Of a DNA stretch of 64,000 bases, positions 1 to 40,931 are shown in pieces. Every line of letters starts with the position of its first letter. Within the stretch, counting starts at the first letter, position 1. The notes beneath the pieces were generated by a model. It was given only the letters and a program-made list of their open reading frames with translations, did no database searches and was not told the origin of the DNA. The DNA is from Lepidodermella squamata. Its lineage: Eukaryota > Animalia > Gastrotricha. Both the position numbers and the translations under genes were made by a program. The stretch spans positions 3,224,001 through 3,288,000 of the forward strand of contig JBLDXI010000001.1 of NCBI GenBank assembly GCA_047495785.1. Direction: 5' to 3'.

Positions 1-779
1 GAGCAATGAGGTTATCACAGTGGCCTCTGATCAAACTGCTAAATGAATCTATCAGCTTAGCACCTGTAGCTCGAATTTCCTTTTCTACGTCATCAGCGTT
101 TCGGCCTATCTTGCCAAGTAAATCTTCAAGCCTGGGCTTCACAGTCAACTCAGCTTTCTCGCTCCGATTTTTCAACTAAATTCATCGAAGCATTAGAGAT
201 TATACATTTTCAAACAAAACTTGCCCACTCATTTATGAAGTGAATTTCGCCTCGAACCAATTCAAGATGAGCGACAAAGCAAAGTGAGCAAAACTGAACG
301 TAACAGTGCGGACAAATTTTCGAATTTGCATCACCATGAGCCGCCTGATGTGGACATGTTTCGCCAATTCGCGCTTTCTTGGCACTTTGAACCTCTTCCT
401 TCAAAACATCGACCGCTCTTTTTACAGCGATGTTAGCTGTAAAGATTCAAGTGCATCATCATTCAGGAGAAAACATGAAATCATGGGGAAATGTATTACG
501 CTTGATGGATTCCACACTTCCTTGACAGCGACACTCAGGGCATGCTATTTTTCCTCGTTGCGGTAATGAATCTACAATTTTCTTGATGCAACTCGAACAA
601 AACGAATGACCGCATTGAGACAACATTTTAGGATCTTCTGCCAAATCGAGGCAAATCGAGCAAGTCAACGCCTGTGCACAGAATAGCTGATCAAATTAGA
701 AGAGAGATGGACTAGATTTTTGTACCTCCTCAATACCCCGACTTGGTCCCGGCAAACTGGTACTGCTCGAGGAGGTCAT
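1..779 (-). CDS. TRIM-like protein (RING, degenerate B-box, coiled coil), copy 1; 3' part runs off the left edge
   Basis: ATG 779; exon 1 779-726 (MTSSSSTSLPGPSRGIEE), GT-AG intron, exon 2 from 671 with C3HC4 RING CSIC...CGHSFCSSC...CPEC; B-box-like CPH...CPHC...CSLC...H in ORF 210-404; same exon layout as copies 2 and 3. Confidence 0.85.
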
Positions 780-849
780 AACAAAATTCTTTCTAATGAA
801 AACAACAGAATTTCAATACACACGTAGGAAAAAATTGTTTAAAAAAATT

Positions 850-3407
850 TCAGCGATTAATTTTCCCGCAGTTCAGAATCGCAATCATGTCATTCATCAA
901 GTTTCGGGGGAACTCAGCTTTCCCAACGTTGCATGGCCTTCTACCGGCTTTATTGCGGTGCTTCAAAAGCTGGCGAGAAGCATCAAGTTTCAGAAGGCTG
1001 GAGACAACATCTACGGAACCGCTCTCCACGGCCAAATGTAGCACATTATTACCATTATCGTCAATATTACCCAAATTGGCGTTTTTACTCAGCAGATAAT
1101 TAAAAGATATTACGAAGTTCTTCTTCGCGCATTCGAATAGAGCGGTAGTCTGATGTGACTGCCGAGTTGCGACATCAACAGGGAGGTGACATTTTTCAAC
1201 GAAGTATTGAAGCATCTCTTTCAAAGAAGCGTCATCAGTGGCACCCAAAACCGCGCAATGAATCAAGTTGTTACCGACACCAAAATACCCATAGATGGCA
1301 TCAGGGCATTTCTCGACCAAATATTTAACAATAGGCAAGTAGCAAGATGCAGCTGCATAGTGCAAGGGCGAGCGGTCAGAGCCACAAAGAAGGGCTAAAT
1401 TTGCACCACGCTCTACTAAGAGTTTCACAGCTGCTAAATTACGACTAGAAGCTGCGAGGTGAATAGGAAACAGCGTTTCAAATCTGTCACTGAAGCATTC
1501 GAAATCTGTTATCATCAACAACTCTTTCATCACATCAACACAACCCAACTTGCAAGCTAAAATGAACGCAGTTTCGCCCTGTTGGGTTTTCGCCGACAAT
1601 ACTCCTGGATTCTTTTCAGCCAGAATTCTAACAGCTTGCGGGTAATTCCTTGCAGTTGCTATGTGAATCGGGAGGTAACCATCAGGTCCGGCGGTGAGCA
1701 TATCGGCGCCATGATTCAACAGAACTTGAACCATACTGCTGTTACCCGAGTCACAAGCTATACAAAGTGCAGTTTTTCCTTCAGCTTTCAAATCCACAAT
1801 CTCTTTCAAGGCATCAGAAATAATAGTCAATGGGTTGCCATGGGCAGCCATATCATGCAACACAGTTCTACCCTTCGAGTCTGAAATCGAAGCTACGGAC
1901 GGATCGATAGCCAGCAAAAACTCGAGAATCTGTGGAAAATCTGCGGCCAGGTGGCAAGCGGTTTTGCCGGCAGAGTCCAAACATTTCAGATCGCACTGAG
2001 AAAGATTAGCCAGCAATTCAACTGATTCGAGTGAACCGGACGCAACGGCTTGAAGCAGGAGAGTTCGCTGCGAATCGGTCTCGTCTCGATGCCGAAGGAT
2101 GATACTCAAGCCTGGTGCAGGCAATTTCGATAGCAGTGTCTTCAACAACTCAGAATTTCCCGACGAAGCAGCTTCATGAAACTCGAGATATATGTATTCC
2201 TTCAATAGAAATGCTTTGATGCGCGATATGAAAGTTCCCGCGAACAAACCTTGGTATTAATATACTCAATGTCATCTTCGTCAAAGTACATTGTGAAACA
2301 GTTTTCCAGCTTTTTGCGAGTTATGTCGACGAAATCTTGGCGTAGCTCAACGCAGAATCGCTCTTTCATTGCTGCACATCGATCGATTTCAAGCATATCC
2401 TTTACCTAATGCGCAGAATTGGTCAACTTTCAATCTTCGAAGTGTATACAAAGAGTTGCAAAACCAACCTCTCCGCACTTAGAAAACACAATGTCATGCA
2501 GATGCGCAAAATCTTCGCCAGAGTTGAACAGGAGTGGGGCTTCCATTACTTGTTTGGTCAGCTTGCACCGTTCGCTGTCGTCCGAGTCAACCTGCTGAAC
2601 AATCGATTGCACGGATTCCAATTGCTCAATCTTGATTCCTTCGACTCTAGCAATCAGGCTATCGCAGCGTTTTTCGATCAATTCCTGGAGAGATGCGATT
2701 AGTTCTTTGCCCGCTTCTCGGATTTCTTCCTTTGCTTTCGCAGCTCTTTCCTCTAACATGGCGGAGACTGCTTCGAAACGTTTCTTCGCGTGTATAGCCG
2801 CTGTTTCACCTCGGCTCTCAAGCTGAAGGGGGTGGAAAATTTGCATTGCAGCAATAGCTCGTTATCAGATTTACCCAGCCATTCGCAAAGCATATTTCAC
2901 TGCGAACCAGTTCGAGATGTGCGATGAAACAAGACGGGCAAAACTGGCTAGTACAATGCCGACATGACTTAATGTTTGGCTTTGATAGCGTCACTAAATG
3001 AAGGCACGACTCGCCGATTTTTGCTCGCTTCAAACCGTCATTTTCATCCTTCAAAACGTCTACCGCACGTTTTATAGCAATATTCGCTATAGAAGAGATG
3101 TAAAAAATTATTTTTCCCGCAACATAGAGTTAAACCCACATTTTATAGAATTAACCGTCCCAACACTACGGCACTCAGGGCAAGATATATTTCCTGCCTG
3201 TGGCACCTGGTCAATTATTTTCTTGATGCAACCCGCGCAGAAAGAATGGCCACATTGTGGCAACACTTTGGGATCTTCGGCCAAATCGAGACAGACCGGG
3301 CATGTTAGAGCCTAAAATATTTGAATCTTTCAAACAATTGCACAGCGGTAGCCTGACTAGCTTACCGCTTCGATGCTGCGACTTGTTCTTGGCAAACTGT
3401 CATTCAT
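850..3407 (-). CDS. TRIM-like RING/B-box/coiled-coil protein with C-terminal ankyrin repeats, copy 2 (multi-exon)
   Basis: ATG 3407; RING CPVC...CGHSFCAGC...CPEC (~3311-3150); B-box-like ORF 2818-3054; coiled-coil ORF 2430-2846; phase-0 introns join KCGE|VKDMLEIDRC and INTK|EYIYLEF (intron 2249-2200) to about 11-12 ankyrin repeats (GKTACHLAA, GKTALCIAC, GNNVLHLAV). Confidence 0.88.
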
Positions 3408-3437
3408 AACTCTAGTAAATTGAAAATTAAAGATTTA

Positions 3438-6400
3438 TTACGTTCGAACTGGATTCGCACCAGTAGTTGTAAAAGCTTGATCTGGAATATTATCAAATTC
3501 TTCAAAATTAAGATATCTTTTCAGCATTTCCGGAATGGGCAGTGACTCAATAATTTTGGGCCGCTTGAAAGCACCCCTAGGCAGCAAATTAAGAAAGACT
3601 TTGCGCGATATAGCTTGAAGCGATTGCGGAAATCGGGTCAGAAAAGCTCTGAAAACCTCCTTATCGCGCCGACTTTTCCCTTTGTGCAATAAGGACAACC
3701 CAGAAGATGGGTACGGGATTTGACGACGATCGAATTCAACAAAAATGCTGATTATAGCTGGACTGACCGGCAAATAGGTGTGAACCCCTGGGTTAGGTCG
3801 GTAGCCAGCTCTCAGAAACAGAAGCAAGGCTTTCGTAGCTCGCTTCTTCCGAACAAGGGGCCAAGCAAATTGCCGGGCTGTCGTATCCATTATTTTGGCG
3901 ATTGCGATATTTGGCCGATAATCGCCTGCTGCTTTGAATAATAACTCAGCGAATTCATCGTCGTAAGCTGCGTAAGCAGGTAATTGCTGGAGAACTTCAA
4001 TGGAAATGAAAGAACGCGAAGGGTCGATACATGGCTCTTTCTGGGATCTTAAGACCGATTTCAGAATAGGAACTATACGGGACTTGTCGTAGGAATCATC
4101 GTCATCGAATCTCTGCAAGAGTAAGCAGAAAGGATGATTGCGTAGATCGCCTCGTTCGAATGAATCATGCAGAGGAGCACCTAAAATTAAAAAGCAAAAA
4201 TATATAATTCGGGTACGGATTCAATAAGCGAGCGTTGAAATTGAAGTTACTGTACCCATCTATATAAAAGTACAACCTTTTTAGTAGTCTTTACCCTGGT
4301 CTCTCATAATTAAACTGCATCTTTCTTTCAACGTGAAATTTCGCCCGTTAGCTGAAACTAGCTGCGAGCAATTGTGTCTAGGTTTTTCGATCTGGTTGGA
4401 AATGAACATTTTTAAACGACTGGACGTGAAGATTGCAAGATTCCAATCGTGTTCATGGACACCTGGTTTTCGCCAAACCCCTTCCTCTTTCGCCGCTTGT
4501 TGACCGAGGAGACCTACGCTGGAACCGTCGCGCCAACCGACTTGTCCTGGATCTGAGTGTTGTCATCACTGCAAAACAGAAGCTGCCGCGCGGCGAAAGT
4601 CAATTCAAGTACGGCGGTCAGTTGCTATTCCAGAGTTGGCAAGACGGCAAAGTTGTCAACTTCGTTTCAACTTGTCATGCTGGATGGCCGCATGAGAAAG
4701 TCGAACGAAAGCAAAACGATGGCAAGCCGGCCATGATTTCCTGTCCTCCTGTGGTTCCTGACTACCAGGCTCACATGCGTTGCGTTAAAGTTGCCGAGCG
4801 CCGGCGCCAGTCTTACGATTGTTCAATTCCTGGTAAGAAATGATTCCGGCCCCTAATATGCTACGGCATCGAGCAGGCCATCTGCAATGCCTAGAGGTTG
4901 CTTTTACCGAGGTGATTGGTAACCCGCATTTTCCGACTTTACTCTTCCGGCGACAGCTTATCGACGAGCTGCTCGAGGCGGGCGGTGGTCGGCCGTTGGC
5001 GGTGACGAAAGCAAGAAAGATCGGCGAGCGACTTGACCCGCTGACAAAAACCGATGCCTGGATGTCTGGTGGTCTGGTGGTTAGTCAACAACTTGAAAGT
5101 CTAATGAAAACTATTATTTTTTCTATTTTTAATAGATCGGGATCTTCAGCCCACTCACAACTGGAAACTCGCCACGAGATGCTTAGCGAGCTGCTTCGAA
5201 GCCTGACGGACTAACGACTTCTGGGCGAACTTAACGTGCTAAGCGATGTATTGTCGGAAATATCTGAAAATCTTGCACGCCGATATAAGCTTGGTCGCGC
5301 ATCGAAAGCTGTTCGGCTGTGCTCGGCCATTTCCTTGTCAAGGATGGACCCTGTTTGGAGGAATTCAAACTGTCGGTCGGCAAAGATGGGTGCTTCAAGG
5401 ATGTCCCGTCTCTCATCGCAAAGACGCAAAATTGGCTCAAAAAATGTTCAACAAGATGATATTGAACATGACAGGGCTAGTGGATGTTAAGTCTTGCAGT
5501 AAACATCGATTCGACCCAAAGCTGCCCTTGCTGACTCTGACTATGGCATTGAGCTCATCGCTCGCGATGCGTTTCGATCAAGTGAAAAACCTTCTATGAC
5601 CAAGTACAAGCGCAGCTATATACTACTGATAGACCCAATGTATTTTTGTGTTGTATCTACCTGATTCTAGTTTTATTATGGCTGTTCCTCGGACCGGATT
5701 CTTATTGCTGATCTCCCTGAAGAAAAAACTCAGAAAAACGCGAAAAAACGCAAGGCTGAAGGTGAAGACGGCGGCGGAGCCAGCAAGCCAATGAAATAAG
5801 CAACAATCGACAATGACAAAGAGGCTTGGACCACACAATTGTAAATACTTTAAATTGTCAGTGCTCTTGATAATTTGAGATTAAACAAGTTAAAGATTGA
5901 AATTGAATGTGTTCTCTTCACATGTTAAAAGCCTTAAATTTTAGTCGTCTGAAATTGGCTTGGGTCAACGTACAACATGTTACACGTGATACAAATGAGA
6001 CTCCTTGACATGACTTTTTCTTAGCACTGTAGCAACGTCATTTCATCTTGCCCGATGAAAAGCCTGGCCTGGGTAAAAAACCCCGGAAGCGTACATTGTG
6101 TAAGTATTCTTACACGATTAAAATAAGTTTTCAGCAAGACGATTTTTCCGTTAGGTTTAAGTTCCTCATTTCCTTTATGATAAATTAAAATGCGAAATAG
6201 TAAATTACCGTTATTGATAAATAACTCGATTACTTCCATTGACGCATTTCGATCATGAAGGTAAGCCGCCATGACACAGGCTGGTAAAGTATCGCTCATT
6301 CTTTGGGCGATTCTCTGAATCAAACCAAGTTCCATATGCTGGGACAGCAAAATTGACAGCAAAATATGAACTTCGGGTGAATATGTCATTTTAGCAGAAT

Positions 6401-6800
6401 CATCGCAATTCTTATCATTGAACAGATTTGAAGTTATATAATCAACAAATAAATCGATGATGGCCGAGCAAAGTGTAGCAAATTCATCTGAGGTCATGGC
6501 CTTCATGGCATCACGACGGATCACTGCCGCCAAATCGTTTTTCAGCTCTGAATATTTGTGATTCGACAATCGAACCAGTTGCGGGTTCAAAATTGATGCT
6601 AGAATAACCGAAAAGTCGTGATCAATTGTCTTCGATCCTTTGCCACCGCCGCCTTGATTCCATTTCTTCGTGCCGAATTGATTCGCGATTTTGGCAATGT
6701 ACTTGCGGGCGGTGTTGAATATATCCTCAGCGAATGACTTCTTGGCAAATGGACATTTTGCCTCGCAAATCAGGTCGGCATGGGCGATAATCCGATTCAT
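3438..6800 (-). CDS. Divergent SOCS-box protein, paralogue A (exons 6800-6209 and 4180-3438)
   Basis: Phase-1 donor AACG|GTAATT and acceptor TTTTAG|GT join in frame (NNG-APLHDS). C-terminus PQSLQAISRK...SLPIPEMLKRYL fits BC box plus cullin-5 box. N-terminus LICEAKC...YSPE...PACVM aligns by eye with paralogues B-D. Confidence 0.8.
4560..4980 (+). mobile_element. Decayed piggyBac (PGBD-like) transposase fragment in the intron of paralogue A
   Basis: WQDGKVVNFVSTCH...CPPVVPDYQAHMRCVKVAERRRQSY...KK*, then FRRQLIDELL, matches the piggyBac DDE C-terminal pattern (W-D-K-V--LST-H; P--V-DYN--MGGVD--DQ). Catalytic Asp lost; internal stops. Confidence 0.75.
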
Positions 6801-6873
6801 TTAAAATAAGTTAACAGCCTACATTGCAGCAAAAACTTCAATCTAAGACAAAGGAAACTATTACAGGAAAGGA

Positions 6874-6902
6874 GACCGCCGAGAGTGTTGACCGCCGAGA
6901 GT
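6874..6902. repeat. 13-bp direct repeat GACCGCCGAGAGT x2 upstream of paralogue A
   Basis: Exact copies at 6874-6886 and 6890-6902, about 75-100 nt upstream of ATG 6800. Confidence 0.7.
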
Positions 6903-7415
6903 CTTCTGACCCTAAAATTCAGGTTTTTTTGCGAATAGCACAATAGTACTTCAAAAATCGACTGAAAAACAGATTAACGCGCTGGTAGAAACAAAAATAA
7001 TAAAAAAATATATGTATCATATCTATGAAAGTTGCTATAGTTCGGCGATCGTCACTGGAGCAGTCAGCTACTGTGCTGCAAATTTTTGTCTTTTTCTCTA
7101 TAATGAACTTTTCGAAGAGTCTAATTGAGAATAGTCTGAACGCGAGCAATTCGGAATTCTAACAATGGATAACTAAACCCTAGTTCGGATCCGTATCCAC
7201 ACCAAGAACGGTCGACCGGAGATTGGTCAACCGACTTCGCCCTTTTTCGCCCTTCCTCTCTCAGTCCAGTCGATGCTAATGACAAGAGCAGCAGTAAGCA
7301 GCGGGTGGCTGCTTCAAAAAACACACCTCCTGAAACCCCTGCTTGGGCCGTTGCCATGGAAAGCCGAATCACCGGCTGCTTTGAAGGGCTAATTAATTCC
7401 ATAGCGAAAGCCCAG

Positions 7416-7885
7416 GGGTGTGTTTTTTAAGTCCGGTCTGAAAGAAGTTCAGTTGGTTCGACTCTTTTTTGAACGGTCTGAAGGCGTCATGTGCTGCACG
7501 TGCCGTGAAAAGGGTGAAGACCAAGAAGACCGTGTTGCCAAAATATCAAGTGAAACGGGGTGGCTAGTTAAAATAAATTCATCTCAGAAATGACCAAAAA
7601 TTACCACAACTTCATTCAAAGGAGCATGGATGATGATGGGAGGATGTGGTCGTATGAACACCGTTCACTTCTAGAACTTGTTGGCAAATTTTTAGGGGTT
7701 TTGCAGTTGAATTTTACTCAGGTTCCAATTTAACTGGTCACCCCATTTCACTTGATATTGTGGCAATACTGTCTTCTTAGTGTTCACCCTTTTCACGGCA
7801 CGTGCAGCACATGACGCCTTCAGACCGTTCAAAAAAGAGTCGAACCAACTGAACTTCTTTCAGACCGGACTTAATAAACACACCC
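7416..7885. mobile_element. PIF/Harbinger-like MITE with ~155-bp terminal inverted repeats and 3-bp CAG target-site duplication
   Basis: GGGTGTGTTTTTTAAGTCCGGTCTGAAAG... at 7416 mirrored by ...CTTTCAGACCGGACTTAATAAACACACCC ending 7885; CAG at 7413-7415 and 7886-7888; no internal ORF. Confidence 0.85.
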
Positions 7886-7898
7886 CAGGTAGAAGAAT

Positions 7899-8500
7899 TT
7901 GAAAGAGTTCACGGCAGACTATCAACTTTCAAGACGGAAAGCATTTGCGGAATGGCATTACGCTAATGCAGCGTTACATTTGATTCATTTAATGCAGCGT
8001 TTCCTGCTTTCATTTTTTAAGCTATCGCGTGGCAGTTGCGCACATTGCGAACCGCCAGGATGTTGTCGCAAGTACCCAACAGGGGCGTTCGGCAAGCAAA
8101 GTTCAATAAGCCGCCCCAAAAAATACTTCGAGCTATTTCCGGAGGAGGAAATCTCCGCACCACCGAAAATGGGTCCTCCAAAAACCAACAACTTTTTTAA
8201 TAGTTGGTTAGGAAACGAAGGGTTCCTTCCCGACCACCAATTCGGATTTCGCCGAAGAAGATCCGCGGTAGATCCCTTGTTTAGGCTAATCAGTAATACC
8301 GCATTGGTAATGGCGAGACACCTTAAACTAGTCGCCGCTGCTCTCGATTTTCGTGCTGCGTTCAACTGCGTGTGGCACGACGGTTTGAGAACCTGAATTC
8401 TCCGTTGAAGTAGAAGACGAGTCCCAAAAATGGAACGGAGTCCCGCAAGGAAACCCCCTATCCCCTCTTTTTGCCTTTATTTTTCTACCTCAGATATGCA
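7899..8500 (+). mobile_element. Degenerate non-LTR (LINE, Jockey/I-like) reverse-transcriptase fragment
   Basis: FLPDHQFGFRRRRSA...AALDFRAAFNCVWHDGL followed by NGVPQGNPLSP (~8434-8466); internal deletions and a stop. Confidence 0.8.
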
Positions 8501-8957
8501 GGATAGAGCTTTCGCACCAAACGATGCGTTTGCCGCTGGATCGGTCGCTTGAACGACCCTTGCCACTGTCGCTCTCAGGTCTAACGGGGTCGCCTGCCGC
8601 CGCCTCAGATCGCAGATCGCAGCAACTTTACAAAAATGGCGAGCAATTTTTCATCGAAATCAAAATCCATCAGAAATCTTCGATCAAAGCATTTGGATCT
8701 GTATCCACTACGCGATCGAATCATTTGCCAAGTGAAGTTAGGGTCGCAACAATTCAAGATGAGCGAACTCCAGAATTTATTCCTAATGCCAAACACATCT
8801 TATAGTGTACCGAGTACCAGCGAAAGGTATTACTTCAAGCAATTGTAAATATAATCTTTTCTGAGAGATTGAGTTTGAAATTGCAAGTTGCAAGAGAGAG
8901 ATTTGAGCTAATTAATAATGGAAAAAGCACAACGTGAATGGACATTTCAATGAAACG

Positions 8958-11503
8958 TTACTTCAAAATAGCCGTCATCTCATTTATCAAGCTTTTGGGA
9001 AAATCAGCTTTAGCAACGTCGATTGGCATTTTACCGGCTCGATTTCTGTGCCGCAAAAGTTGTGGAGCAACATCCAGCTTTAGCAGACTGGATACGACGT
9101 CAAGCGAACCGTTGTAAACAGCCAAATGAAGCGCGTTATTGCCATTGCCATCAACTGTTGCCATATTAGCTTCTTTACTCAGCAGGTAATCGAAACAAAG
9201 AGGTAAATTTCTTCTTGCACATATCTGTAAAGCCGTAGATGGATTAGGCCCCCGTGTCGCAATATCAACAGGAACTTCACATTTCTCGACCAAATATCGC
9301 AGAAGCTCTTTCAGGGAAGAATCATCACAAGGGCCCGTGAGCGCGCAGTGAATAGCGTGGTGACCTTGACCGGTGAACTCTTTCAGAGTAGCAGGGCATT
9401 TCTCAATCAAATATTGAAGGATTGGCAAGCAGCCGTGGTTGGCTGCGTAATGTATGGGAAGCCGCTTCGCGCCACAAGCGAGCGTCAAATCAGCACCGTG
9501 TTCGGCTAAGAGTTTGACAGCATCCAAATTATGACTGGAAACTGCACAGTGTGTAGCAGAGCAAGCCTCATATCCTTCAGAGACGCATTTGCTATATGTG
9601 GCAGCCAAAAAGCGTTTCATAACCTCTTTAAATCCTAGTCGGCATGCAAAAATGAACGGGGTCTCGCCGCGTTGGTTTTTCGCCGCCATAACCTCGCGAT
9701 TCTTTTCAACCATCAACCCAACGATTCGGGCGTTATTCTTTGCAGTTGCGACGTGAATTGGAAGGAAGCTATCAGCACGGCCAATAAACATGTCGGCGCC
9801 ATGGTTCAACAAAAACCCAACCATTTCTTCATTTTGCTTATCGCAAGCTATGGATAGCGCTGTTTTCTCTTCAAATTTGAAATCCACTATTTTTGCGAGG
9901 ACGTCGTGATGCCCAGCAATCGGCTTCCCGCGAGCGGCCATTTCATGCAGAACTGTACTGCCCGTTGAATCTACGACCAGGGCTATAGAAGGGTCGATAT
10001 CAAGTAGAAACTCGAGAATCTCTGGATAGCTCGCTGCCAAATGGCAAGCTGTTTTTCCGAGTGAATCAGTGCCTTTCAGATCGCGTTGCTCGCTATTTGC
10101 AAGGAGCTCAACAGATTCTAGCGACCCGGCCGCAGCGGCTTGAAGCAGGAGAGTTCGCTTGAAATCGGATTCATCTGGATGCCTGAGTACAAGATTCAAG
10201 CCGGGAGCTGTAACTTTTGACAACAGAGCCTTCAACATCTCAGCGTTACCAGACGAAGCTGCTCTGTGAAACTCGAGATACATGTAATCCTTGATTAATA
10301 AAAAAGAAGGTGTGAAGAAGATACCGTAGGACATCTCAAAGCAAACCTTGGCAATGAAACGCTCATTGTGTTCATTCTCATCCAGATTAACAGTGAAGCT
10401 GTCCACTAGTTTTCTTCGATTCAAATCGACAAAATCTGATCGACATGACACATAAAACTTCTCTTTCACCGCTGAGCAGCGATCGATTTCAAGCATTTCC
10501 GTCACCTAGCATAATCGCCAATTTTTCAAGTAAATAAAGAAAATCACAACCAACCTCTTGGCATCTTTCAGACACCAATTTGTGAAGTTGCACGAACCCT
10601 TCGCCTGAGTTGAACAACAGTGGAGCTTCAATGACTTTTTTCATCAACTTTTGACGTTCACTGTCGTCCGAACTCAACTTCCGAGAAATCCTTTGTACAG
10701 ATTCTAGCTGTTCCGCCTTCATTCCTTCAACCTTAGCAACCAGGCTATCGCAGTGCTTTTCAATTAGTTCCTGAAGCGAAGCGATTAGCTCTTTACCCGC
10801 CTCTCGAATTTCTTCCTTTGCTTTCGTGGCTTTGTCTTCAATTTTTGCGGTCACCGTATCGAGACGTTTCTCCACGTGTTGTGCCGCTGTTTCGCACCGA
10901 CTTTCTAGCTGGAAAAAGGGATATTCCGACGAACAAATTGCCGAATTAAAAACTTACCCAACCATTGCTGAAGCATATTTCACTACGAACTAGTTCCAGA
11001 TGTACAATGAAACACGACGGGCAAAACTGAACATCACAATGCCCGCAAGTCTTGATGTTTGACTTCGATAACATCGCCAAATGCTGACATGTTTCGCCGA
11101 TTTTCAATTTCTTCACAGAGTCATTCTCTTCCTTTAAAACCGCCACAGCCCTTTTCACGGCAATGTTAGCTAGAAAACGCCAGAACCATGATTTTCAGCA
11201 TTAGTGAATATTAAACTTATGCTTACGTTTAATGGAATTGACACTTCCTACACGGCGGCATTCAGGACAAGCGACATTTGCTGCTAGCGGCTGTTGCTCA
11301 ATAATTTTATTGATGCAAACCGAACAAAACGAATGACCACATTGCGATAACATTTTAGGGTCTTCGGCAAGGTCTAGACAGATCGAACAGGTTAACGCCT
11401 GCAATATCAAGGATATTTAGACGAGGAAATTCTTCATAATATATGCTTAGCATACAGCTTCAATGCTGCGGTTTGGATTAGGCAAAGTCTCATTTGTAGC
11501 CAT
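8958..11503 (-). CDS. TRIM-like RING/B-box/coiled-coil protein with C-terminal ankyrin repeats, copy 3 (multi-exon)
   Basis: ATG 11503 (MATNETLPNPNRSIEA|); RING in ORF 11201-11410; B-box-like ORF 10946-11158; coiled coil ORF 10489-10875; intron joins CQE|VTEMLEIDRC; 57-nt intron 10346-10290; ankyrin array to stop 8958; collinear with copy 2. Confidence 0.88.
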
Positions 11504-12175
11504 CTGACGGGTCGAACAGCTATATAATTATAATTTCTAAATAACATACAAAAGCAACAGCCCATGTCATAACTCGTTTAGGAAAATTTTATCGCTGAAT
11601 TCGAATTGAAAGCTTGAAGAGATCCTACTGGGGGCAGTCTGTGAGCAAGACAAGAGCCGACAGGTTCGGCCAAACTCTAGTCTAAGCTCAAAATCAAAAT
11701 TGGTACTTACAAGTAACGCTTGTGTATGTATATAAATCGAAAAAACTTCTCACGCTGGACCTTCTTCGAATGATTCCATAAGTTGGTAAGTTTGCGCGCT
11801 TTGTATTTAAAAATAAGTAACCTACGATCAAAATTCCAAACATCATTGAAACTGAAGTAAAAACACCTGCAACAATTCTTTCATTAGTTGCGTAGAAAAA
11901 ACTAAGATGAAATTCTTCGAGCTGAGCGACAACATACCAAAAATGAAAAACAGGCGAAGAAACGCGAAAGTATTCTTTTTTAAGCGCAAAAGCATGAAAG
12001 CTTTGAGACCAAAACTTGTTGAAGATGAGACATTCAAAGACGAATTCCGATTATCCATTTGAAACAGTTTAGAAATAACAACAATGAAGAATGGCAGTTG
12101 AATTATCAGAGCTAAAAAACGTGTTGGGCAAAGTGTTGTGCCCGAAACCACTTCAAAATAACGTTCGGTGACATT

Positions 12176-13627
12176 TTACACCAAGTTTTCTCGATTCAAA
12201 TCACGTGTAGACCAATTTTTCAGTACAAATGCAGTTGGAACTTCAAATTCTTTGAATAAAAGATAGTCTTCAAGTATTTTTGGCATCTGCAGAGAGGTAA
12301 TAGCGGTTGCTCGATCTACAACTCCGCAGGGCAGATTCTTCAGAATAGCTTGGCGCGAAATGGCCTGCAGGCAACGGGGAAAAGCCTTCATGGCAGAATT
12401 CAGCAGGTATGTGTAGTCTTCGCTTCGACGGCGGTTGCGCTGATCAAACTTTTCAATAACTTCCGTTACTGCTTTCAAATCGCAAGAAGATGTTTTAAGA
12501 AATTCCAGCAGCGCGCAAAAAATTGCTCCCTCACGACCCCATATATTTGTACTGTACAATCTGAGATTGTTGAAAGATAATCCGGATACAAAAGAAAGCT
12601 TGCAGTAATATTTAATCATTTTATAAAAAGATTCATATCGCACTCCAGCCCGGATCAAAGGCAGAAGTAAATTGGTGAAAATTGTCGCAGCAATTTTCTT
12701 AGAGAAACCTGTCTCACGCGTTTTCGAAAAGGTTTTGTTGAAAAGTTTACAAACAAAAGATTCATCAATAGTTACGGAGTGGAATCGAAACTTTTCAATC
12801 AACTTCGCCGTCATCAATGGATTGAAGACAGATAGGCCAGTTAACATAGGAATGCAACTGCCTTCGTCCTTCAGATATGGTATCATCACTTCAAGAAATC
12901 GGTTGTAGAAATCGATTTGCTCATTACTGGCCAATCGCTGGTGTTGAACGCAGTCGGCCAACAGCTCACAATACTTCGATAAAACTTTATATTTCATCGC
13001 AGGATGACGCTCGTCCTGAGTTCCTTCGACGACCGTGTCGATTAAACCTCGGTCAACATCAGCGCCATTTTGTACAAGAATTTCGAAACCTTTCAACCAC
13101 TGTTTGTAATATGCATGGAAAAGAAAGGACTGTAAAACACAGATTGGAGCTGTTTCTCGAACAACTTTGAGAGCGTTAAACAATGTTTCGCAATCTCGAA
13201 CTCGAACGGCAAAATTCATCTGAACATAGGCTTCAGCACTAAAGTCTTTTGTCACGGCTAATTTTCGCGACTCTTTGGCAATTTCGGAAACGACTTCCAA
13301 TTTATGTACTTCTGAATCGAAAGGCAGTAGAACAACTTTTTGTTCTCCGTTGATTGTAAGATTTCTGTCCAGAAATGTTATACACCCTTCGTTATTACTC
13401 GGATACTCTTTGACAATGCGTCCATTCATGCGCGTTATCACTGGCATAGAGACAGACTCAGCGACTCGAAGCAAATCGTCCAAGAATTTACGTGATGAAA
13501 TGATGCAATTATCCGAACCACCGCAAACAAAATTGGAGCTATGAGTCTTTATTTCGTCATTAGTACCAATAATCGCATTTCTTGCATCTTGCATTTCTTC
13601 GACATTCCCCTCTGGATCATTAGACAT
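12176..13627 (-). CDS. Divergent SOCS-box protein, paralogue B (intronless, 483 aa)
   Basis: Single ORF; C-terminal PRCLQAISRQAILKNLP...SLQMPKILEDYLLF SOCS box; one ankyrin-like half repeat FEILVQNGADVD. Confidence 0.82.
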   Translation of the reverse strand: MSNDPEGNVEEMQDARNAIIGTNDEIKTHSSNFVCGGSDNCIISSRKFLDDLLRVAESVSMPVITRMNGRIVKEYPSNNEGCITFLDRNLTINGEQKVVLLPFDSEVHKLEVVSEIAKESRKLAVTKDFSAEAYVQMNFAVRVRDCETLFNALKVVRETAPICVLQSFLFHAYYKQWLKGFEILVQNGADVDRGLIDTVVEGTQDERHPAMKYKVLSKYCELLADCVQHQRLASNEQIDFYNRFLEVMIPYLKDEGSCIPMLTGLSVFNPLMTAKLIEKFRFHSVTIDESFVCKLFNKTFSKTRETGFSKKIAATIFTNLLLPLIRAGVRYESFYKMIKYYCKLSFVSGLSFNNLRLYSTNIWGREGAIFCALLEFLKTSSCDLKAVTEVIEKFDQRNRRRSEDYTYLLNSAMKAFPRCLQAISRQAILKNLPCGVVDRATAITSLQMPKILEDYLLFKEFEVPTAFVLKNWSTRDLNRENLV

Positions 13628-13840
13628 GTCGGAGGTATCGCCAAATGAACTATAGTAATAATCTATCTATAAATTGCAAAATAAAAACGATGTTCAAAAC
13701 CTTTCAAAAACATTTCTGAGCTGAGCAAAAATATTGGCGAATTATTGAAAAACAGGCTTAGATTCGACGAGAAAGCTGAAAAAATCCAATGCTCTAATAA
13801 AGAAACTGGTTTTGAAGAGTTTTGCTGGATTTCAGGCCAC

Positions 13841-15280
13841 TCATTTTCCAACTACTAAAGCAGCGGGCACTTCGAGTTCTTTGAATAAGAGATAGTCTTC
13901 AAGAATTTTAGGCAGTTGTAGCGAGACAATAGCATTTGATCGGTCTGCAACTCCATAAAGCAAATTTTTTAAAATAGCTTGCCTCGCCATGGCCAGCAGA
14001 GGACGAGGAAATGCCTTTGCTGCGTAATGCAGCAAATAAGCATAGTCTTTGTAGCGATTGCGGTTATATGGAGTGGCCCCACAGCCGAAATTTTCATGTA
14101 ACTCTTTGAAATTACACGAAGAATTGCTGCAGCACTCGAGCAAAAATTGAAAAATAGCATCCTCACGGCCCCAAATTCTGATACTGAAATATCCAAGGCG
14201 GTTGAAAAATAGTCCGGATCCAGGCCAATCCTTGCGGAATAACCGGGTCTTCCAGTGAAACGAACCGTGTCGCAATCCAGCACGTATCAATGGCAGTAGT
14301 AAATTTGCAAAAATAGTAGCAGCGATTCGTCTAGAAAAACCAGTGTGAGATACAACCGAAATAGTATCATTGAAAATTCCCATCAAAGCACAATGTAAAC
14401 TGAAAGATGCATCGAAAGATCCGCATTGCGCTCGCAAATTTCCTAGCAACTTCGCTGTCATCGCTGGATTAAAGACTGACAACCCTCTTAGAATACCGAT
14501 ACAATCGCATGTGTCCTTAATAAACGGCTCCATAACTCCGACGAATTTGTTGTGAAAATCGATGTCCTCGTTATCGCTAGGCCATTCCTGGCTTTGCAAG
14601 CACGTATTCAGCAGATCGCAGTACCAATGCAGCAAGAAGTATTTAGCCGCTAAGTGACGCGGCTCGACGTTTCCTTCCGAGAGGCAATCCTCTTCCACCA
14701 GGCTTCAATCAACATCGGCCCCATTTTTGATAAGAACCTCGAAACCTTCAAACCATTTTTTAACAGTAGAAGTGTATAGAAATGACTGTAAAACGCAGAT
14801 TGGAGTTGTTTCTCGTACGATTTCAAGGGTTTTCAATAATGTCTCGTGATCTCGAATCCGAACAGAAAAATACATCTGAACATATGCTTCAGCGCTGAAA
14901 TCTTTGGTTATAACCAATTTTTTCGACTCTTTGGCAATTTCCGAGATGACCTTCGCTTTTTGCTCTTTGGAATCGCAAGGTGATAGAAAAATTTCACGCT
15001 CTCCATAGTTCGTAAGATTCTTGTCCAAAAATGCGACAACCTTCTTGCAATTACTGGGGTACTCCTTTGAAACGCAGCCATTTACGAGATTCATACGCGC
15101 TATCACTGGCTTGGAGACCGACTCGGCTACTTGGAGCAAATCATCCAAGAATTTGGGTGATGAAATGGCGCAGTTTTCCATGCCGCCACAGACAAATTTA
15201 TACCCATGGATACCTTCGTCGTATTCGCTCGCATCTACTTCCCCTTCTTCGCATTCGTATTCTTCGCCATCGTCAGACAT
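13841..15280 (-). pseudogene. Divergent SOCS-box paralogue C, interrupted by one in-frame TGA
   Basis: ORFs 14705-15280 and 13841-14698 are in the same frame. TGA at 14707-14705 aligns with CGA (Arg, GADVDR) of paralogue B. SOCS box PRPLLAMARQ...SLQLPKILEDYL intact. Confidence 0.82.
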
Positions 15281-15534
15281 GGCAGGATACAGGATGCTTT
15301 TAAACCGAAATAAATAATTTGTATTCTTCTATATAGGAAGTTGATATTACGTAGCAAGTTTTCAAAGAGAAAAGTAGAATAATAGAATGATGAAACCACA
15401 AACAGTCAAAGAACGTAAATTACCTTAAAAAGTCGAATCAGACAAATCGATAAGGATTCCAAACGACTACAAACTGGATAGTTTCGCGATTTTCACCCAA
15501 CAATTACAACAGAACTAGAATTAAAATGTCTTTA

Positions 15535-18500
15535 TTAAAGCTCAACGTTAAAGGCAGTGAATTCTGAAAAGTTCAAATAGGCTTCAATACATTGTGGTAG
15601 GCAAAGAGCCGAAATAGCTTCATTTCTCTGCTTCAAGCCACAAGGCAGCTTTTTCAGCACAGCCCTTCTAGACAAGGCCTGTAACTTTCCCGGCAGCTGC
15701 AAAGATTCATATAGCACAGTGTTACGATTCAGCTTCACTTTAACCACTCTATCGCTCCGGCATTCGTACAATAATTCGCAAAACAAGTCTAGATAATTCG
15801 ATCTACTACGCCATAGCAAACCAGTTATTAGCTGCAAATCAGCCAATCGCCAAAATGGCTCGGTAACTTTCAGCCGAGCGCCAGACCTCAGAAGTGGTAC
15901 GATTGTGCTTGATATAATTCGTGCCACCAATTTAACAGGCATATTGCGCATCAGCGACAAAGCACCACCCAAACTCTCGAAGACATATTTCAGCGGCGAC
16001 TGCTGCGACAAGATTCGAGACCGGAAAAGCGGACTGACTTCTTCGATGATGCGTTCGACGGCTTTCGGGTGTAACGCTGCAGCTGGGTAGATTTCTTGAA
16101 GGCAGTTGTGGCCCAGTGAAAAAGTCCAGTTGTTAACATGGCTGAGCAGAAGGTCCAGTAGAGAATTCACGAGCCGAATCTCGTCCATTATGTCATTGGG
16201 CAGGGAATCAAGATCAGATTCAAGAACCGCGTCGAATATATCATCGTAGAGCCGCATGCAATCGAAAATTGGAGCGTCGTTATCATCTAAGGAAAAGGTT
16301 TTCAATTAATTGTCGAAATTTTGCAGAAGTGCGATAAATTAATTAATTCGCTGTCCCTACCGTAATTTTGAAAGCAAACTTAAATTTATTCCCCAGACTG
16401 GGCCAGGCACTAATGCCAAGTAGCGCGTTGTTATTATCGGTCTGATCGCCACCACATTTGAAAAGATCGCGAGTCTAACTTTATGCACCTTGGCTGGTCA
16501 TTCATTTCGTCGAAGCCACTAAGAAGGACATCGAATTTAAGGGGTAAGTTCCCACTCAGTATAGACCATATTACGCTTTTTGCTTATTCATCAGGTCCTA
16601 CGAGAGGCGATCTACTTCCAGTTTGATGGTTCTATCTTATCATACTGACAGGTAGAGTCCAGGACGAGCTCTCTGCCGGGTTCGCATCTCGGCGGCCGGA
16701 TAGTCCCTTAACATGCCGCAATTTTTAGTCGGGAACAAAATCTGTCTGAGTTCTGTTCCTTCCATTTGGAAGAAAGCAATTGTTGTTCCGATTTATAAGA
16801 GATCGGGTGATACATCGAATGCACTGAACTACCGCCCTATTATTCAGGCGAACCGAAGACCATGGCAACGCCGATGCTTTGAGTCGTTTACCGGTCGGTG
16901 AAGATCCCAAATTCGATGGGGAGGAAAGTGCAGATGATGTTGATATGGTTCTGACAATCAAAACAATCGGGTACCAATCAACGAATGAAGCAAACGCTAT
17001 GACTCGAGAGTCGGTTCGTGACCCAATCGTGTCCAAAGCCGCGATGTTTATTCGAAATGGTTGGCCTAATCAACTGGATGAACAAGAGCTGCGAGATCTT
17101 AAAAAACTCTCACCGTATTTGTCAGTTAACGGACCTTGTGTATTTTATGGAAACAGGTTGCTTATTCCCAAGAATTTGCGTGAAGATGTTCTGAAAGTCG
17201 TTCACCTGGGACATTTCGGTATCCAGCGAATGAAGCAACTGGCTCGAACGGCGGTCTACTGGCCGGGTATCGATGATGCGATAAATAACCTGGCTAAAAC
17301 CTGTTCAAGCTGCAACGAACATCAAAACAACCCGATCAAAGCACCTGTTCACCCTTGGTCACTTCCGGAACAACCTTGGACTCGAGTTCATGTCGATCAT
17401 GCGATAAATTTCCTCGAGTCGAATTGGCTGATCTTGGTGGATTCAACATCGCGCTATCCTTGCATTCACCCCACCAAATCACTGACGGCCAAAACGACTT
17501 TGGAATTGCTCGATGAAGATTTCGCTCATTTCGGTTTTGCTCAGGTGCTGGTTACCGATAATTTTCCCATGTTTCATTCAGAAGAATTTCAACGGGGTTG
17601 TGCAGATCGGGGAATCATCCACTTGACTGGCGCACCGTATTTAGATCTGTCGAAAGCCTTCGATGTTGTTCCGATCGACTTTTTACTTGCCAAGCTGGAA
17701 GAGATCAACATCTGTGGCAGCGTGCTCGGCTGGATCAAGGATTACTTGTCTGGTAGAAAATTTCAAGTCAGCGTTAGCAACTCGAAATCAGCATTTTCCG
17801 ACGTGCCTTCTGGGGTTCCGCATGGCTCAGTGCTCGGCCCTCTGTTGTTTGTTATCTTCCTACTCCACATTAATCAGTGCATCAGTGATAGCAACGCAAC
17901 ATTTTTTGCAGATGATACCAAGCTATATAAAATTGTAAATAATTCTTCCGACTGCGACAAATTGCAGAATGATTTATCCAAACTGTGCTCTTGGTTCACA
18001 GAAAACGGCTTGCTGATAAATCCTAGAAAATGTTATGTTCTTCGACTAGGGCATCGTCGCTTTTCATATGATTACCATATCGATGGTATCAAGGTTGAAA
18101 CTGTCGATTGTGTACGAGACCTAGGTGTTCAAGTGGATAGCGAGCTATCTTTCGAGACTCATTGTTGTTTACTAAAGAAAAGGTGCAATAATTTGATTGG
18201 TTGTATTCTCAAATCTTTAAAAAGCAGGAATCTTCGTTTGAAAGCCTATAAAACCTATTATGTTTTACCACTACTCGACTATGCGTCCTTGGTTTATAAT
18301 CCTTTCCATCTCGGGATTATTGATGATCTGGAATCAATTCAGCGAAAATTTTTAATGAAATTGTCGAATTACGAATCATCTGATTATAATTTTCTACTTA
18401 AAAAATTTGATTTGTTGTCTTTGGAACAGCGCCGATTCACTAAAGATATTGTTTTCACTTACAAATTCTATCATAATCTTGTTGACGCTAAATTTTCAGA

Positions 18501-19847
18501 TTTATTTACGCCTTCTAGCAACAAATATTGAGACTTCATCGCATTCGTCAATCTGAATGCCATTTGAACTGCAGAAAATATTCTCTTGACAGACGAATTG
18601 TTAATGTTTGGAATACTTTCAACATCGAAAATGTTAATTCTAGCCTCAATTCATTTAAAAAAATTCTTATGAATATTGATATTGATAAACATCTTGTGTC
18701 GTCAGTGAGGCGCCGTAATACGTGAAAATTATCTTTCTTTTTCTTTTTTACTGTTTGCTACAATCGCAAGTGCGATAATTGCAAGTCAAATATAAATAAT
18801 AAAATAAATAATAAATAAAATTAGTCAGACTAGCATAACACAAATTCGGTAAAAACTTGGCAGTTATATTGATCGATACCGAGCAGAAAATTGATAACGA
18901 TTGAGACTTGAGTCTTGATTACAAGACGCAAATACGTTGGACTCTTATCTAGAGCTTTTCGTGGATCAATCTAGCAACAAATAAGACCCAGATTTCGAAA
19001 ATTATTTAAAATTTGATTCATGTTTTTGGATATTTGATTTTGAACAGTTTCCATCAAAAGCAACCATTTTTAGACACTAACAGAGAAAATTCGAGGAAAT
19101 ATCGCCAGCTTGCTCGCGAAAAAATCTGAGTTCCTAAAACTCAACAATACTGCCTTCATTCGAAACGTTAGCCAATGCACCGGCATAAAAAATGTACGTG
19201 TTCAATGTGAAATAAGAGCGTTTTGTTGCAATTATTTGTGTAACTCCTAATTCTACGCATAAATGTCAATAAGAAAATTAAAAATTACCGTTTCGCAAAG
19301 CCTTTATTGGCGATGCCCCGCACTGCAAAAGCGTTTCCGCGGCTTCGAAATAGCGCCGAGTGACAGCTTCTTTCAAGAAAACTTGCAAAACGCACGTTCC
19401 AATGGATTTTTCGCATTCGATGAGAATAGTTTTCAACAAATCAAACCGCCGAGATCGAAATGCAACGTAAGCATAACAAAATTCTTCGGGCGTGAATTCG
19501 TCCGCCTTATTCACAGTTTTACGCCTAGCCCGCCTTGAGTCGAGCTCTTCAAAAATCAGCTGCCGAACAGCTGGTTTCAGACTAGGGTCGCCAAATCGAA
19601 CTACAAGCCAGTTATCGCCGAATAAGGTCCCGTCAAATAGAGGAACGCCCTCGAAATCGTCATCCAACCTATCATCGTCATCTTCTGACAGCATTAGCCG
19701 GAAAGACGGGTCGCCATCTAAGCCGAGCCGGGTGCGAATGTTGGTGACCAGCGAACCAGCGACTTCAAGAGCTTGGCAGAAAAAGTCTTCTGAGCAAACG
19801 GAACAATCTTCTTCGCATATAAATCCAGAGTGATCAACGTCGTTCAT
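15535..19847 (-). CDS. Divergent SOCS-box protein, paralogue D (exons 19847-19289 and 16286-15535)
   Basis: Phase-1 donor AACG|GTAATT and acceptor TTCCTTAG|AT join in frame. N-exon FICEEDC...FTPE...TCVLQVFL...LLQCGA aligns with B/C; C-terminus PGKLQALSRRAVLKKLP...LCLPQCIEAYL is a SOCS box. Confidence 0.8.
16713..18820 (+). mobile_element. Chimeric retroelement: CR1/L2-type LINE 3' part with an embedded Ty3/Gypsy RNaseH-end/integrase segment, in the intron of paralogue D
   Basis: LINE WKKAIVVPIYK...NYRPI (to ~16842); Gypsy HGNADALSRLP, HLGH...CSSC, WTRVHVD, VTDN, GAPY (~16843-17640); LINE RT YLDLSKAFD, GVPHGSVLGPLLF, FADDTKLY, DLGV; A/T-rich (AATA)n-like tail 18788-18820. Confidence 0.9.
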
Positions 19848-24600: not shown

Positions 24601-26144
24601 TCTCGTGTTCGAACGTCGTTTTTAAAGGCCAAATTTCCAATCGAGCTTTCCAATGAAGCCTTTGAGTATTGCCTGACCTAGTCTTGTCATTTCCCAAACA
24701 ACATTGCGATTTTGGGGTCGCCGAGGGTCCAAACTGATACGACCAATTTCGATCGGCTTAAGCACATCTTCTCCATCTTTCAGAACTGCCACCCCTACAA
24801 CAACGACGACAACAAGTCCTAGAACTACGACGACAACATCTACGACAAGACCTACGACCAAGCCCACCACAACCACTACGACGACAACAAGGCCAACTAC
24901 GACGTAGGTTTTCGACTAGGAAATTGAATCCTGGATTTCAACTGGATTTTAGTCAAATTTATCCAAGAAATACGAAACTGTATGAAATTTCAGGACGACA
25001 ACGCGACCTACAACAACAACTACTACAACCACAACAAGGCCTGCAACAACAACCACTAGGACTACTACGACACCACCAAGACCTACGACATCGACAACAA
25101 CGACCCGAACGACGACTGCAAGACCAACGACTACCACGACAACTTTGCCAGTCATTCAACAACGGCCGAAACAAGACTTCGCGGAATTGGACATAGCTCG
25201 GCACAGGAGAGGCGTACCAACAGCATATCCATGGTAAATTTCAACACAAACTCATAACTTGACGCAATTTCATGTTAAACTCGAATATTTAGGTATGCCA
25301 GAATCATCGCTGTGGTATGTTTGATTCTACACTTAATTTCGAATATTTTGCTATTTTTGAATTTTTGTAGGTCGATTTCCAAGCGCTAGGACCCGGTCAG
25401 GTGTCATCCTGCGGCGGGGCTATTGTTAGCGATCGTTGGCTGTTGACATCCGCGAGCTGCGTCAGCAAACTGCCTTCGCAGACTATGGTCGCTAAGATGA
25501 ATTTTACCGATTCGGCGCAAACTCAGGGCGTTGTCAGGGTTAATGTCGGACGCGTCATCACACATCCTAGCTACGACCCTGACAATTTCGACTACGATTT
25601 CGCCATGCTTCAAATTCAGGGTACCTATTCTAAATACCTACGTTTAATTTTAAAAATTCCAATTTTTTGTATGACAGAATCTGTTGAGCTGAATTCGCCG
25701 AATCTTCACGCGGCTAATATTTTGTCAAGTTGCGATCTATTACCAGATGGCACATCATGCAGTACAATGGGCTGGGGCATGGCGAACTACGAAGACCCAA
25801 TTCGCCGAAGCGCTTATGCCCACAAGCTGGTGATGGTCGACTCGGACGCAGCTTGTCGCAACTCGTTTTTCAACCCGACAAAGTACACGCCTAGAAAATT
25901 TTGCGCTATTGGCGTGAATAATGGCTCGCATACAACAGCGCCGAATGAGTGTCAAATCAGCTATGGCGCGGCGATTTCATGCGTTGTTACAGAATCAGTG
26001 TGGCAGGGCAGTAGAGTGGCGCTATTTGGCCTCGCTTCGTCTTTCCCGCGCGGCTGTGGCGACCCTGATAGCAGTTATATGGTTGCATTTTCAACGCCTT
26101 GTTTGGTTAGGGCTTGGATTGAGAGCATTATTGCTTATGAATAA
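21683..26144 (+). CDS. Secreted tandem trypsin-fold serine-protease homologue (two domains, Thr-rich mucin-like linker), about 11 exons
   Basis: Hydrophobic N-terminus MYTAISSTIIYIFFLVK; domain 1 VPWQ...CSGALVAPQWFLTTAHC...DFNFAL...VDDGGPL; Thr/Arg/Pro repeats 23380-23515 and 24784-25150; domain 2 CGGAIVSDRWLLTSASC...HPSY...DYDFAML...GWG...WIES. Confidence 0.82.
22290..22517. mobile_element. Imperfect hairpin/MITE in an intron of the protease homologue
   Basis: AACCGGGGTTATTTGG...AACCAAATACCCTCAAAATATGTTCA mirrored by TGAACATATTTTGAGGGTATTTGGTT...CCAAATAACCCGGTT; arms about 95 bp. Confidence 0.7.
24039..24189. mobile_element. Tc1/mariner-pogo-type MITE with TA target-site duplication
   Basis: TA|CCGTATTTGTTCCTATAGCAGCC ... 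GGCTACTGTTGGAACAAATACAG|TA; intronic. Confidence 0.7.
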
Positions 26145-39848: not shown

Positions 39849-40150
39849 AGCTCTGTCTTCCTCAAGCAAAGAGTTGGCTTCAGATGCAGGTAATAGCTGG
39901 CGGCTGGCGGATGAAACAGCCAACAGCCAAAATGCTTGTTCAGTGGTTAAAAATAGTAGAATAGTCACCCTCTTGTATCTCATATCTCATCGATGCCACT
40001 CGATGAATGCAGTATGTAACTCGGTACTTTAGTCGTTTAGCTTAGAAGCTTGTCTGATCTGTGTTCATCAGTTTTCACTTCTTGTTCGAAATTACCGATT
40101 CTCGATTCTATTTTCGAATATTGCTGCAATTTTATTTCCAGGTTTTAAAG

Positions 40151-40741: not shown

Positions 40742-40931
40742 AGCAATTCCTGTTACTTCGTCAAACGAAGCTAAATCCCAGTGAAGGCAATAACTGATTT
40801 GCTTGATGTGAAATAATTACTTCTTTGATGCAACACAAAGTGTTTAGTTGATGCCAATGTTTAGCTGCTTGCAATTAGTGAAACTATAATTTGTGATTTT
40901 TTCTTCCGATGTAGAAAATGTTACGAACTAA

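Follow-up and report, generated by a model that had tools for sequence, protein, structure and literature searches.

A 64,000-nucleotide (nt) stretch of contig JBLDXI010000001.1 of the gastrotrich Lepidodermella squamata (referred to below as the window) begins with a row of minus-strand genes from two families related to ubiquitin ligases (E3 enzymes), one encoding proteins that end in a SOCS box and the other TRIM-like proteins that combine an N-terminal RING with ankyrin repeats. In the direction of transcription the order is SOCS_D > SOCS_C > SOCS_B > TRIM/ANK1 > SOCS_A > TRIM/ANK2 > TRIM3. The explanation that we favour, and regard as fairly probable, is that this is a birth-and-death neighbourhood common to two lineage-expanded families of ligase receptors, with operon-like genome packing and with SOCS_A, TRIM/ANK2 and TRIM3 probably co-transcribed, but with no dedicated coupling between the families. 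Members of the two families of substrate receptors would have come together in a tandem cluster, in a genome that packs same-strand genes very tightly, and the last three genes, separated by 30 and 70 nt, would probably give one transcript, to be resolved at points where a gene's poly(A) signal meets the splice acceptor of the next, as in the spliced-leader operons of other animals. The mixture of families would then be a by-product of local duplication and packing, not the mark of a two-part machine. Co-transcription of the three genes is considered probable because fragments of complementary DNA (cDNA) bridge the first two and because poly(A) signal and acceptor coincide at their junction.

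Two families of ligase-related genes and their duplication

Gene models were rebuilt as minus-strand open reading frames (ORFs), mainly within positions 1-19847 (Table 1). They bear out the seven genes, the order and the spacing given by an earlier sequence-only reading of this stretch, the gaps from stop codon to next ATG being 254, 213, 672, 2157, 30 and 70 nt in transcription order, and they add an eighth member, a decayed remnant (SOCS_E) upstream of SOCS_D and just beyond the range of that reading. The remnant has lost its N-terminal part, can be read only with a change of frame and is interrupted by an in-frame TGA (20073-20071) inside its BC box; SOCS_A and SOCS_D match it at 20115-19954 (tblastn), and 52 nt containing an AATAAA separate its end from the ATG of SOCS_D. 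One of the seven paralogues had been described as broken, and SOCS_C is indeed interrupted by an in-frame TGA (14707-14705), which aligns with a CGA (Arg) codon of SOCS_B. Reassignment of TGA to a sense codon was considered for SOCS_C and SOCS_E and rejected, as TGA terminates TRIM/ANK2 and the TGA of SOCS_C is CGA in SOCS_B.

SOCS_A-D align end to end and share an N-terminal F-x-C...C, a central, ankyrin-like P-x-C-V-L ... L-L-x-x-G-A, a P-L-[IL]-R-x-G and the SOCS box at the C-terminus. The Pfam SOCS_box profile (PF07525, curated cut-off 23.5 bits) scores above its cut-off in SOCS_A (28.4 bits, E 1.9e-06), SOCS_B (26.8) and SOCS_C (26.6) and slightly under it in SOCS_D (22.1 bits, E 1.9e-04). 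SOCS_A fits the strict forms of both the BC box ([STP]-L-x3-[CSA]-x3-hydrophobic; SLQAISRKVF) and the Cul5 box (L-P-hydrophobic-P-x2-hydrophobic-x2-[YF]-L; LPIPEMLKRYL), and in SOCS_B, C and D one or both patterns are matched just in loosened form (e.g. LQMP, LQLP and LCLP for LPxP). From these motifs the family would be expected to recruit Elongin B/C, Cullin5 and Rbx2. The paralogues are as diverged as had been supposed, SOCS_B and SOCS_C being 57% identical and every other SOCS pair 20-27% (24-27% along the length for SOCS_D with SOCS_B).

Relatives of the SOCS genes are few. A word-indexed search with SOCS_B gave no match and no recorded contig carries its exact product, while a profile of the family found 39 relatives among 1.84 billion representatives, 13 of them with E below 1e-10; all six that were looked up lie on metagenome contigs. 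Among the aligned family sequences the SOCS_box is recognised in 33 of 37 and Pfam ankyrin repeats in 7 of 37, and the SOCS profile aligns with the TRIM/ANK ankyrin exon over 53 columns (hhalign, probability 84%). A first AlphaFold2 model, made from 7 window fragments, was discarded as too poor (predicted local distance difference test score, pLDDT, 53). The model of SOCS_B made from the 37-sequence alignment is all-helical with a mean pLDDT of 80, and its exhaustive structural alignment with 48,161 chains placed ASB8, ASB9 and ASB7-Elongin B/C within the six best. The alignments with ASB7, ASB8 and ASB9 were by far the longest (193-256 residues), at a Z score (6.8) tied with that of unrelated helical repeats. 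An atlas search on features also returned ASB-type clusters.

ASB proteins combine ankyrin repeats with a SOCS box and are substrate receptors of Elongin B/C-Cullin5-Rbx2 ligases. The SOCS genes resemble them in the C-terminal SOCS box with its BC-box and Cul5-box motifs, in a helical, repeat-like body with the ankyrin-type LLxxGA motif (and ankyrin repeats in the 7 relatives mentioned above) and in having ASB7, ASB8 and ASB9 among their best and longest structural matches. They differ in the lack of a Pfam ankyrin match in SOCS_A-D, in an N-terminal Cys-containing region of their own, in the low identity of the copies to each other (20-27% outside B/C) and in having no named orthologues. They look like a very divergent ASB-like group and might belong to the ASB family proper.

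All three TRIM-like genes encode an N-terminal RING (Pfam zf-C3HC4; E 2e-12, 1.7e-11 and, in TRIM3, 5e-13), which is followed by a second Cys/His module, a helical region and, in both complete genes, a long ankyrin array (E 1e-47 to 1e-50 in TRIM/ANK1 and TRIM/ANK2). By eye the spacing of the second module (C-x-H-x11-C-x2-C-x4-C-x2-C-x3-H) resembles that of a B-box2, but the Pfam zf-B_box profile gave no match to it at E up to 1 in any of the three genes and TRIM-like is therefore the safe name. Exon 4 of these genes (118 amino acids, aa) has weak matches to helical families, TRIM3 is 41-52% identical to TRIM/ANK1 in two tblastn segments, and the matches to the ankyrin exon of TRIM/ANK1 were all generic ankyrin proteins, about 25% identical. 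TRIM proteins usually end in PRY-SPRY, NHL or filamin domains. What the present genes have in common with the TRIM / RBCC ligases is the N-terminal C3HC4 RING, the Cys/His-rich module, the helical region and a variable C-terminal recognition domain, together with tandem arrangement and diverged paralogues; the differences are the unmatched zf-B_box and a C-terminus that consists of a long ankyrin array with generic relatives only. A protein of this layout would probably act as a self-contained RING E3. There are thus two different E3-related families at the locus, one with a SOCS_box and one with RING and ankyrin repeats, as the sequence-only reading had recognized, and its suggestion that they are lineage-restricted agrees with the empty SOCS_B search, the 39 relatives in 1.84 billion and the generic matches of the ankyrin arm.

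That reading also drew attention to the repeated occurrence of a SOCS gene followed by a TRIM/ANK gene. This adjacency does occur twice, but no more than expected by chance (63-71% of permutations): four SOCS and three TRIM genes give at least two SOCS-then-TRIM adjacencies in 22 of 35 orders (63%), and with five SOCS genes the count is 40 of 56 (71%), with a mean of 1.9. The two pairs also differ from each other. TRIM/ANK1 and TRIM/ANK2 are 58% identical whereas the SOCS genes upstream of them, SOCS_B and SOCS_A, are 20% identical with BLAST aligning the SOCS box alone, and the spacers are 672 nt (SOCS_B to TRIM/ANK1) and 30 nt (SOCS_A to TRIM/ANK2). As both divergence and spacing are discordant, duplication ran within each family and not by pairs, and duplication of a SOCS gene and a TRIM/ANK gene as a unit was rejected because of the discordant divergences. 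Within the families, the SOCS_B-SOCS_C and TRIM/ANK1-TRIM/ANK2 pairs have similar rates of nonsynonymous (dN) and synonymous (dS) substitution.

At the loci of eight relatives (contigs of 2-26 kb) the SOCS genes adjoin housekeeping genes or another SOCS gene, their neighbours including a haspin kinase, an ABC transporter, Tom22 and a RasGEF. The TRIM/ANK proteins gave no tblastn match to these eight loci, so that the search for further SOCS plus TRIM-ANK pairs that had been proposed yielded none there. One relative's metagenome contig (L003) carries two members of the SOCS family in tandem on one strand (251-1618 and 1728-3125), 110 nt apart; tight tandem packing of the family therefore occurs outside this genome as well. 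The other comparison that had been proposed, dN/dS by domain, gave 0.18-0.26 in every domain tested between paralogues, with dS saturated (above 1), which is consistent with purifying selection. The notion of a system coupling two E3 classes is accordingly not borne out, given an order that chance would give, pairs that were not copied as units and eight loci lacking RING-ankyrin neighbours, and nothing was found in support of an anti-pathogen role, dN/dS being as stated.

Tandem expansions of E3 receptors are known from nematode F-box and MATH-BTB genes and from TRIM clusters of fish and primates (PMC2533329, PMC3228819). The present locus shares with these the tandem arrangement of paralogues, the presence of pseudogenes and transposons and the restriction to a lineage, and it is unlike them in having two E3 families in one same-strand row and no sign of whole-domain positive selection. 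A literature search found no account of a cluster that combines SOCS and TRIM-ankyrin genes.

Expression and the junctions between genes

X1 and X2, the only two public sequencing runs found to contain the locus, were compared over positions 700-6699. X2 gives even coverage throughout with two haplotypes and is therefore DNA. For X1 the record gives only 'RNA?', and its status was deduced from intron skipping: the run has no depth between 4300 and 6100, its contigs leave out 2200-2249, 2406-2468 and 4181-6208 with minus-strand GT..AG ends, and its loose ends at 3140 and 2875 run exactly into the next exon. In these respects X1 behaves as cDNA. Contigs or loose ends confirm four of the five TRIM/ANK2 introns, and the SOCS_A intron of 2,028 nt, filled with transposon remains, is spliced out. 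This skipping of introns and exact continuation of exons show that both SOCS_A and TRIM/ANK2 are expressed and that their splicing agrees with the models. X2 has alternative letters at many coding positions at about 40% of depth and X1, which is filed under another organism label, carries these alternative letters; an allelic divergence of a few percent is present.

Two X1 contigs join SOCS_A to TRIM/ANK2. One starts at 3379, in exon 1 of TRIM/ANK2, and is preceded by minus-strand 3516-3487, and the other stops at 3429, which is 17 nt upstream of the AG acceptor, and continues into minus-strand 3537-3508, both of these joined segments being SOCS_A coding sequence; each joint has two allelic differences and no other match in the window. 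Many further X1 joints are between opposite strands, 98-161 nt apart, and look like read-pair or snap-back artefacts inside single molecules. Because the two bridging joints resemble these, the contigs would have come from molecules that span the 30-nt gap, and they fit co-transcription of SOCS_A and TRIM/ANK2, which we take as suggestive and not as proof.

The sequence of the junction points the same way. An AATAAA (3439-3434) overlaps the stop codon of SOCS_A, and the AG acceptor at 3413-3412 lies 20 nt past it, where cleavage would be expected. An AATAAA likewise overlaps the stop codon of SOCS_D and another directly follows that of the SOCS_E remnant, and every ATG of the array has an AG acceptor 2-24 nt upstream. 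The short intercistronic distances are 30, 70 and 52 nt, the last of these after the remnant, and the other four are 213-2157 nt. Coincidence of poly(A) signal and acceptor is the arrangement of nematode SL1-type operons and of tunicate operons without an intercistronic spacer. Compared with the spliced-leader-resolved operons of nematodes, tunicates, flatworms and chaetognaths, the locus has the same close spacing of same-strand genes (30-70 nt), the same poly(A) signal adjoining an unpaired acceptor before the downstream ATG, and RNA-derived fragments that span one junction; it differs in that a leader has not been seen here and in that the genes are fast-duplicating receptor genes. An Rfam scan of the window gave no match and hence no leader-RNA gene, and no description of trans-splicing in gastrotrichs was found in the literature. 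By analogy the downstream genes would be trans-spliced. The claim that the whole array is co-transcribed was thus narrowed to SOCS_A > TRIM/ANK2 > TRIM3, for which the gaps of 30 and 70 nt and the two chimeric contigs over the 30-nt gap make it plausible, with neither a leader nor a full bridging transcript in evidence.

Elsewhere in the window a plus-strand run at 40061-43807 encodes a proteasome beta subunit, a deoxynucleoside kinase and a short PMS2 (632 aa) in near-intronless ORFs about 160-190 nt apart. The best named matches to this PMS2 are about 40% identical and are spread over many phyla. As this housekeeping run is packed in a similar manner, tight packing is a property of the genome and not peculiar to the E3 genes. 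In a study of chaetognaths, operons were annotated as genes less than 250 bp apart, and operon genes showed enrichment for nitrogen and protein metabolism and were under-represented in development, nervous system and signalling (PMC12460157).

Introns, mobile elements and other features of the window

The introns of the TRIM-like genes are 49-63 nt long. Apart from these short introns there are two long phase-1 introns, in SOCS_A (4181-6208, 2,028 nt) and SOCS_D (16287-19288, 3,002 nt), both packed with transposon remains. In the alignment about 9-10 codons lie between their positions, and the two introns may therefore be independent or may have shifted, and SOCS_B and SOCS_C are intronless where SOCS_A and SOCS_D carry them. 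The description of the locus as dense in transposable elements is well founded, with a piggyBac-type fragment in the SOCS_A intron, an integrase/reverse transcriptase ORF in that of SOCS_D and a foldback element at 7412-7889. The third intron of TRIM3 (224-176) begins with GC (GCAAGT), where TRIM/ANK1 and TRIM/ANK2 have GT, and would be either a GC-AG intron or one with a disabled donor.

Beyond the array, pieces of trypsin-like serine protease genes lie on the plus strand at 21883-23100 and 24700-26144, one of them preceded by a Thr-rich, mucin-like low-complexity stretch (about 24700-25200). The GC content of the window is about 42%, and that of the published L. squamata genome is 43% (PMC11660948); the genome paper makes no mention of operons, trans-splicing, ankyrin or ubiquitin families (PMC11660948).

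Table 1. Positions of the array genes, the junctions around TRIM/ANK2 and the associated mobile elements in the window
Feature	Position	Strand	Description
TRIM3	779..1	-	Truncated by window start; 5' part of a third RING / Cys-His module / putative coiled-coil gene; model open for 204 codons
Gap, TRIM/ANK2 stop to TRIM3 ATG	780..849	-	70 nt, U-rich; AG acceptors 15 and 11 nt before the ATG
TRIM/ANK2	3407-850	-	761 aa, 6 exons, introns 50-63 nt
Gap, SOCS_A stop to TRIM/ANK2 ATG	3408..3437	-	30 nt; AATAAA 3439-3434, AG acceptor 3413-3412
SOCS_A	6800-6209 + 4180-3438	-	444 aa, 2 exons, 2,028-nt phase-1 intron
piggyBac-type transposase fragment in SOCS_A intron	4433..4843	+	DDE_Tnp_1_7, E 8.5e-10
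Foldback or MITE-like (miniature inverted-repeat transposable) element in the 2,157-nt TRIM/ANK1-SOCS_A spacer	7412..7889		Inverted arms of 161 nt, 94% complementary; from repeat search
TRIM/ANK1	11503-8958	-	758 aa, 6 exons; ~58% identity with TRIM/ANK2
SOCS_B	13627-12176	-	483 aa, one exon; SOCS_box E 6e-06
SOCS_C	15280-13841	-	Broken by a single in-frame TGA, 14707-14705; 57% identity with SOCS_B
SOCS_D	19847-19289 + 16286-15535	-	436 aa, 2 exons, 3,002-nt phase-1 intron; splice predicted from sequence
Retroelement ORF in SOCS_D intron	16879..18531	+	Integrase fused to reverse-transcriptase fragment: Integrase_H2C2, rve, RVT_1
SOCS_E remnant	~20660-19900	-	C-terminal part of a SOCS-box gene; from sequence, ORFs and tblastn

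Alternative explanations and significance

If Cullin5-type SOCS adaptors and RING-ankyrin ligases formed a dedicated module under common regulation, sharing targets or acting on one another and possibly serving defence, this would account for the single orientation of the genes and the alternation of the families in the 3' half, for gaps of 30 and 70 nt that leave scarcely any space for separate promoters, for the RNA-derived fragments that bridge SOCS_A and TRIM/ANK2 and for the apparent use of ankyrin-type repeats by both families. We nevertheless consider such a module improbable, since the adjacency count equals the random expectation, the pairs are discordantly divergent and so were not copied as units, and the SOCS relatives at the eight other loci have no RING-ankyrin neighbours; moreover, there is no immune domain, dN/dS is 0.18-0.26, and the array includes a broken member and a remnant. 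It would surprise us even more if SOCS_A > TRIM/ANK2 > TRIM3 proved to be a genuine operon, resolved by a spliced leader, in which a Cullin5 adaptor is expressed together with RING-ankyrin ligases because the products act jointly, whether by sharing targets through related ankyrin-type surfaces or by one controlling the level of the other, as might be the case; such a two-ligase surveillance module has not been described in any animal.

A stronger competitor, although still somewhat unlikely, is that each gene is transcribed alone from promoters that lie inside the upstream genes of a compact genome, the bridging contigs being read-through, antisense RNA, DNA carry-over or library chimeras. 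This would agree with the dip in X1 depth at the junction and the fact that neither a leader nor a straight-through contig was seen there, with the abundance of opposite-strand chimeras in X1 and the guessed RNA status on its record, and with the room for promoters at the four junctions of 213-2157 nt. However, X1 depth is nil over the 2 kb intron, so DNA carry-over is low, two independent chimeras connect SOCS_A with TRIM/ANK2, and the poly(A) signal lies together with the acceptor within 30 nt. We give almost no credence to the idea that SOCS_A and TRIM/ANK2 are a single gene, with a fusion product made by splicing past the stop codon or by reading through it. The distance of only 30 nt and the AG acceptor right before the TRIM/ANK2 ATG might suggest this, but among the X1 joints listed none leads from a SOCS_A donor into 3412, the C-terminal SOCS box is followed by TAA and then AATAAA, and the same N-terminal exon occurs in TRIM/ANK1 and TRIM3, which have no SOCS gene 30 nt upstream. 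A SOCS_A-TRIM/ANK2 fusion protein was rejected.

Several points weigh against the favoured explanation, that of a birth-and-death neighbourhood with three probably co-transcribed genes. Among the X1 ends listed there is no spliced leader on TRIM/ANK2 (about 3411) or TRIM3 (about 790), although contigs rarely keep 5' ends, and among the X1 contigs listed none runs straight through the 30- or 70-nt gap. The depth of X1 is 2.4 at 3300-3499 compared with 13-35 alongside, and residual DNA or antisense RNA could yield the bridging chimeras, X1 being RNA by guess on its record. Regarding the families, the absence of TRIM/ANK neighbours beside the SOCS relatives is weak evidence, as their contigs are short (2-26 kb) and from other species, and local positive selection could be hidden by the saturation of dS (above 1). 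Pfam found no ankyrin repeat in SOCS_A-D, Foldseek found no match for the SOCS_B model in the PDB at E <= 0.001, and the tentative ASB-like assignment depends on structural scores that unrelated helical repeats equal.

If the plain explanation is true, the locus is one more case of fast-duplicating ubiquitin-ligase receptor genes and its value is descriptive. It would add to the record of an under-sampled invertebrate lineage two families that are poorly known, one of very divergent, ASB-like SOCS-box genes and one of RING-ankyrin ligases that appear to be built like TRIM proteins. The junction at 3408-3437, where poly(A) signal and acceptor coincide, provides a concrete case for asking whether receptor-type genes, in addition to housekeeping genes, sit in animal operons, and only if the neighbouring products interact would the locus represent a new kind of two-ligase system.

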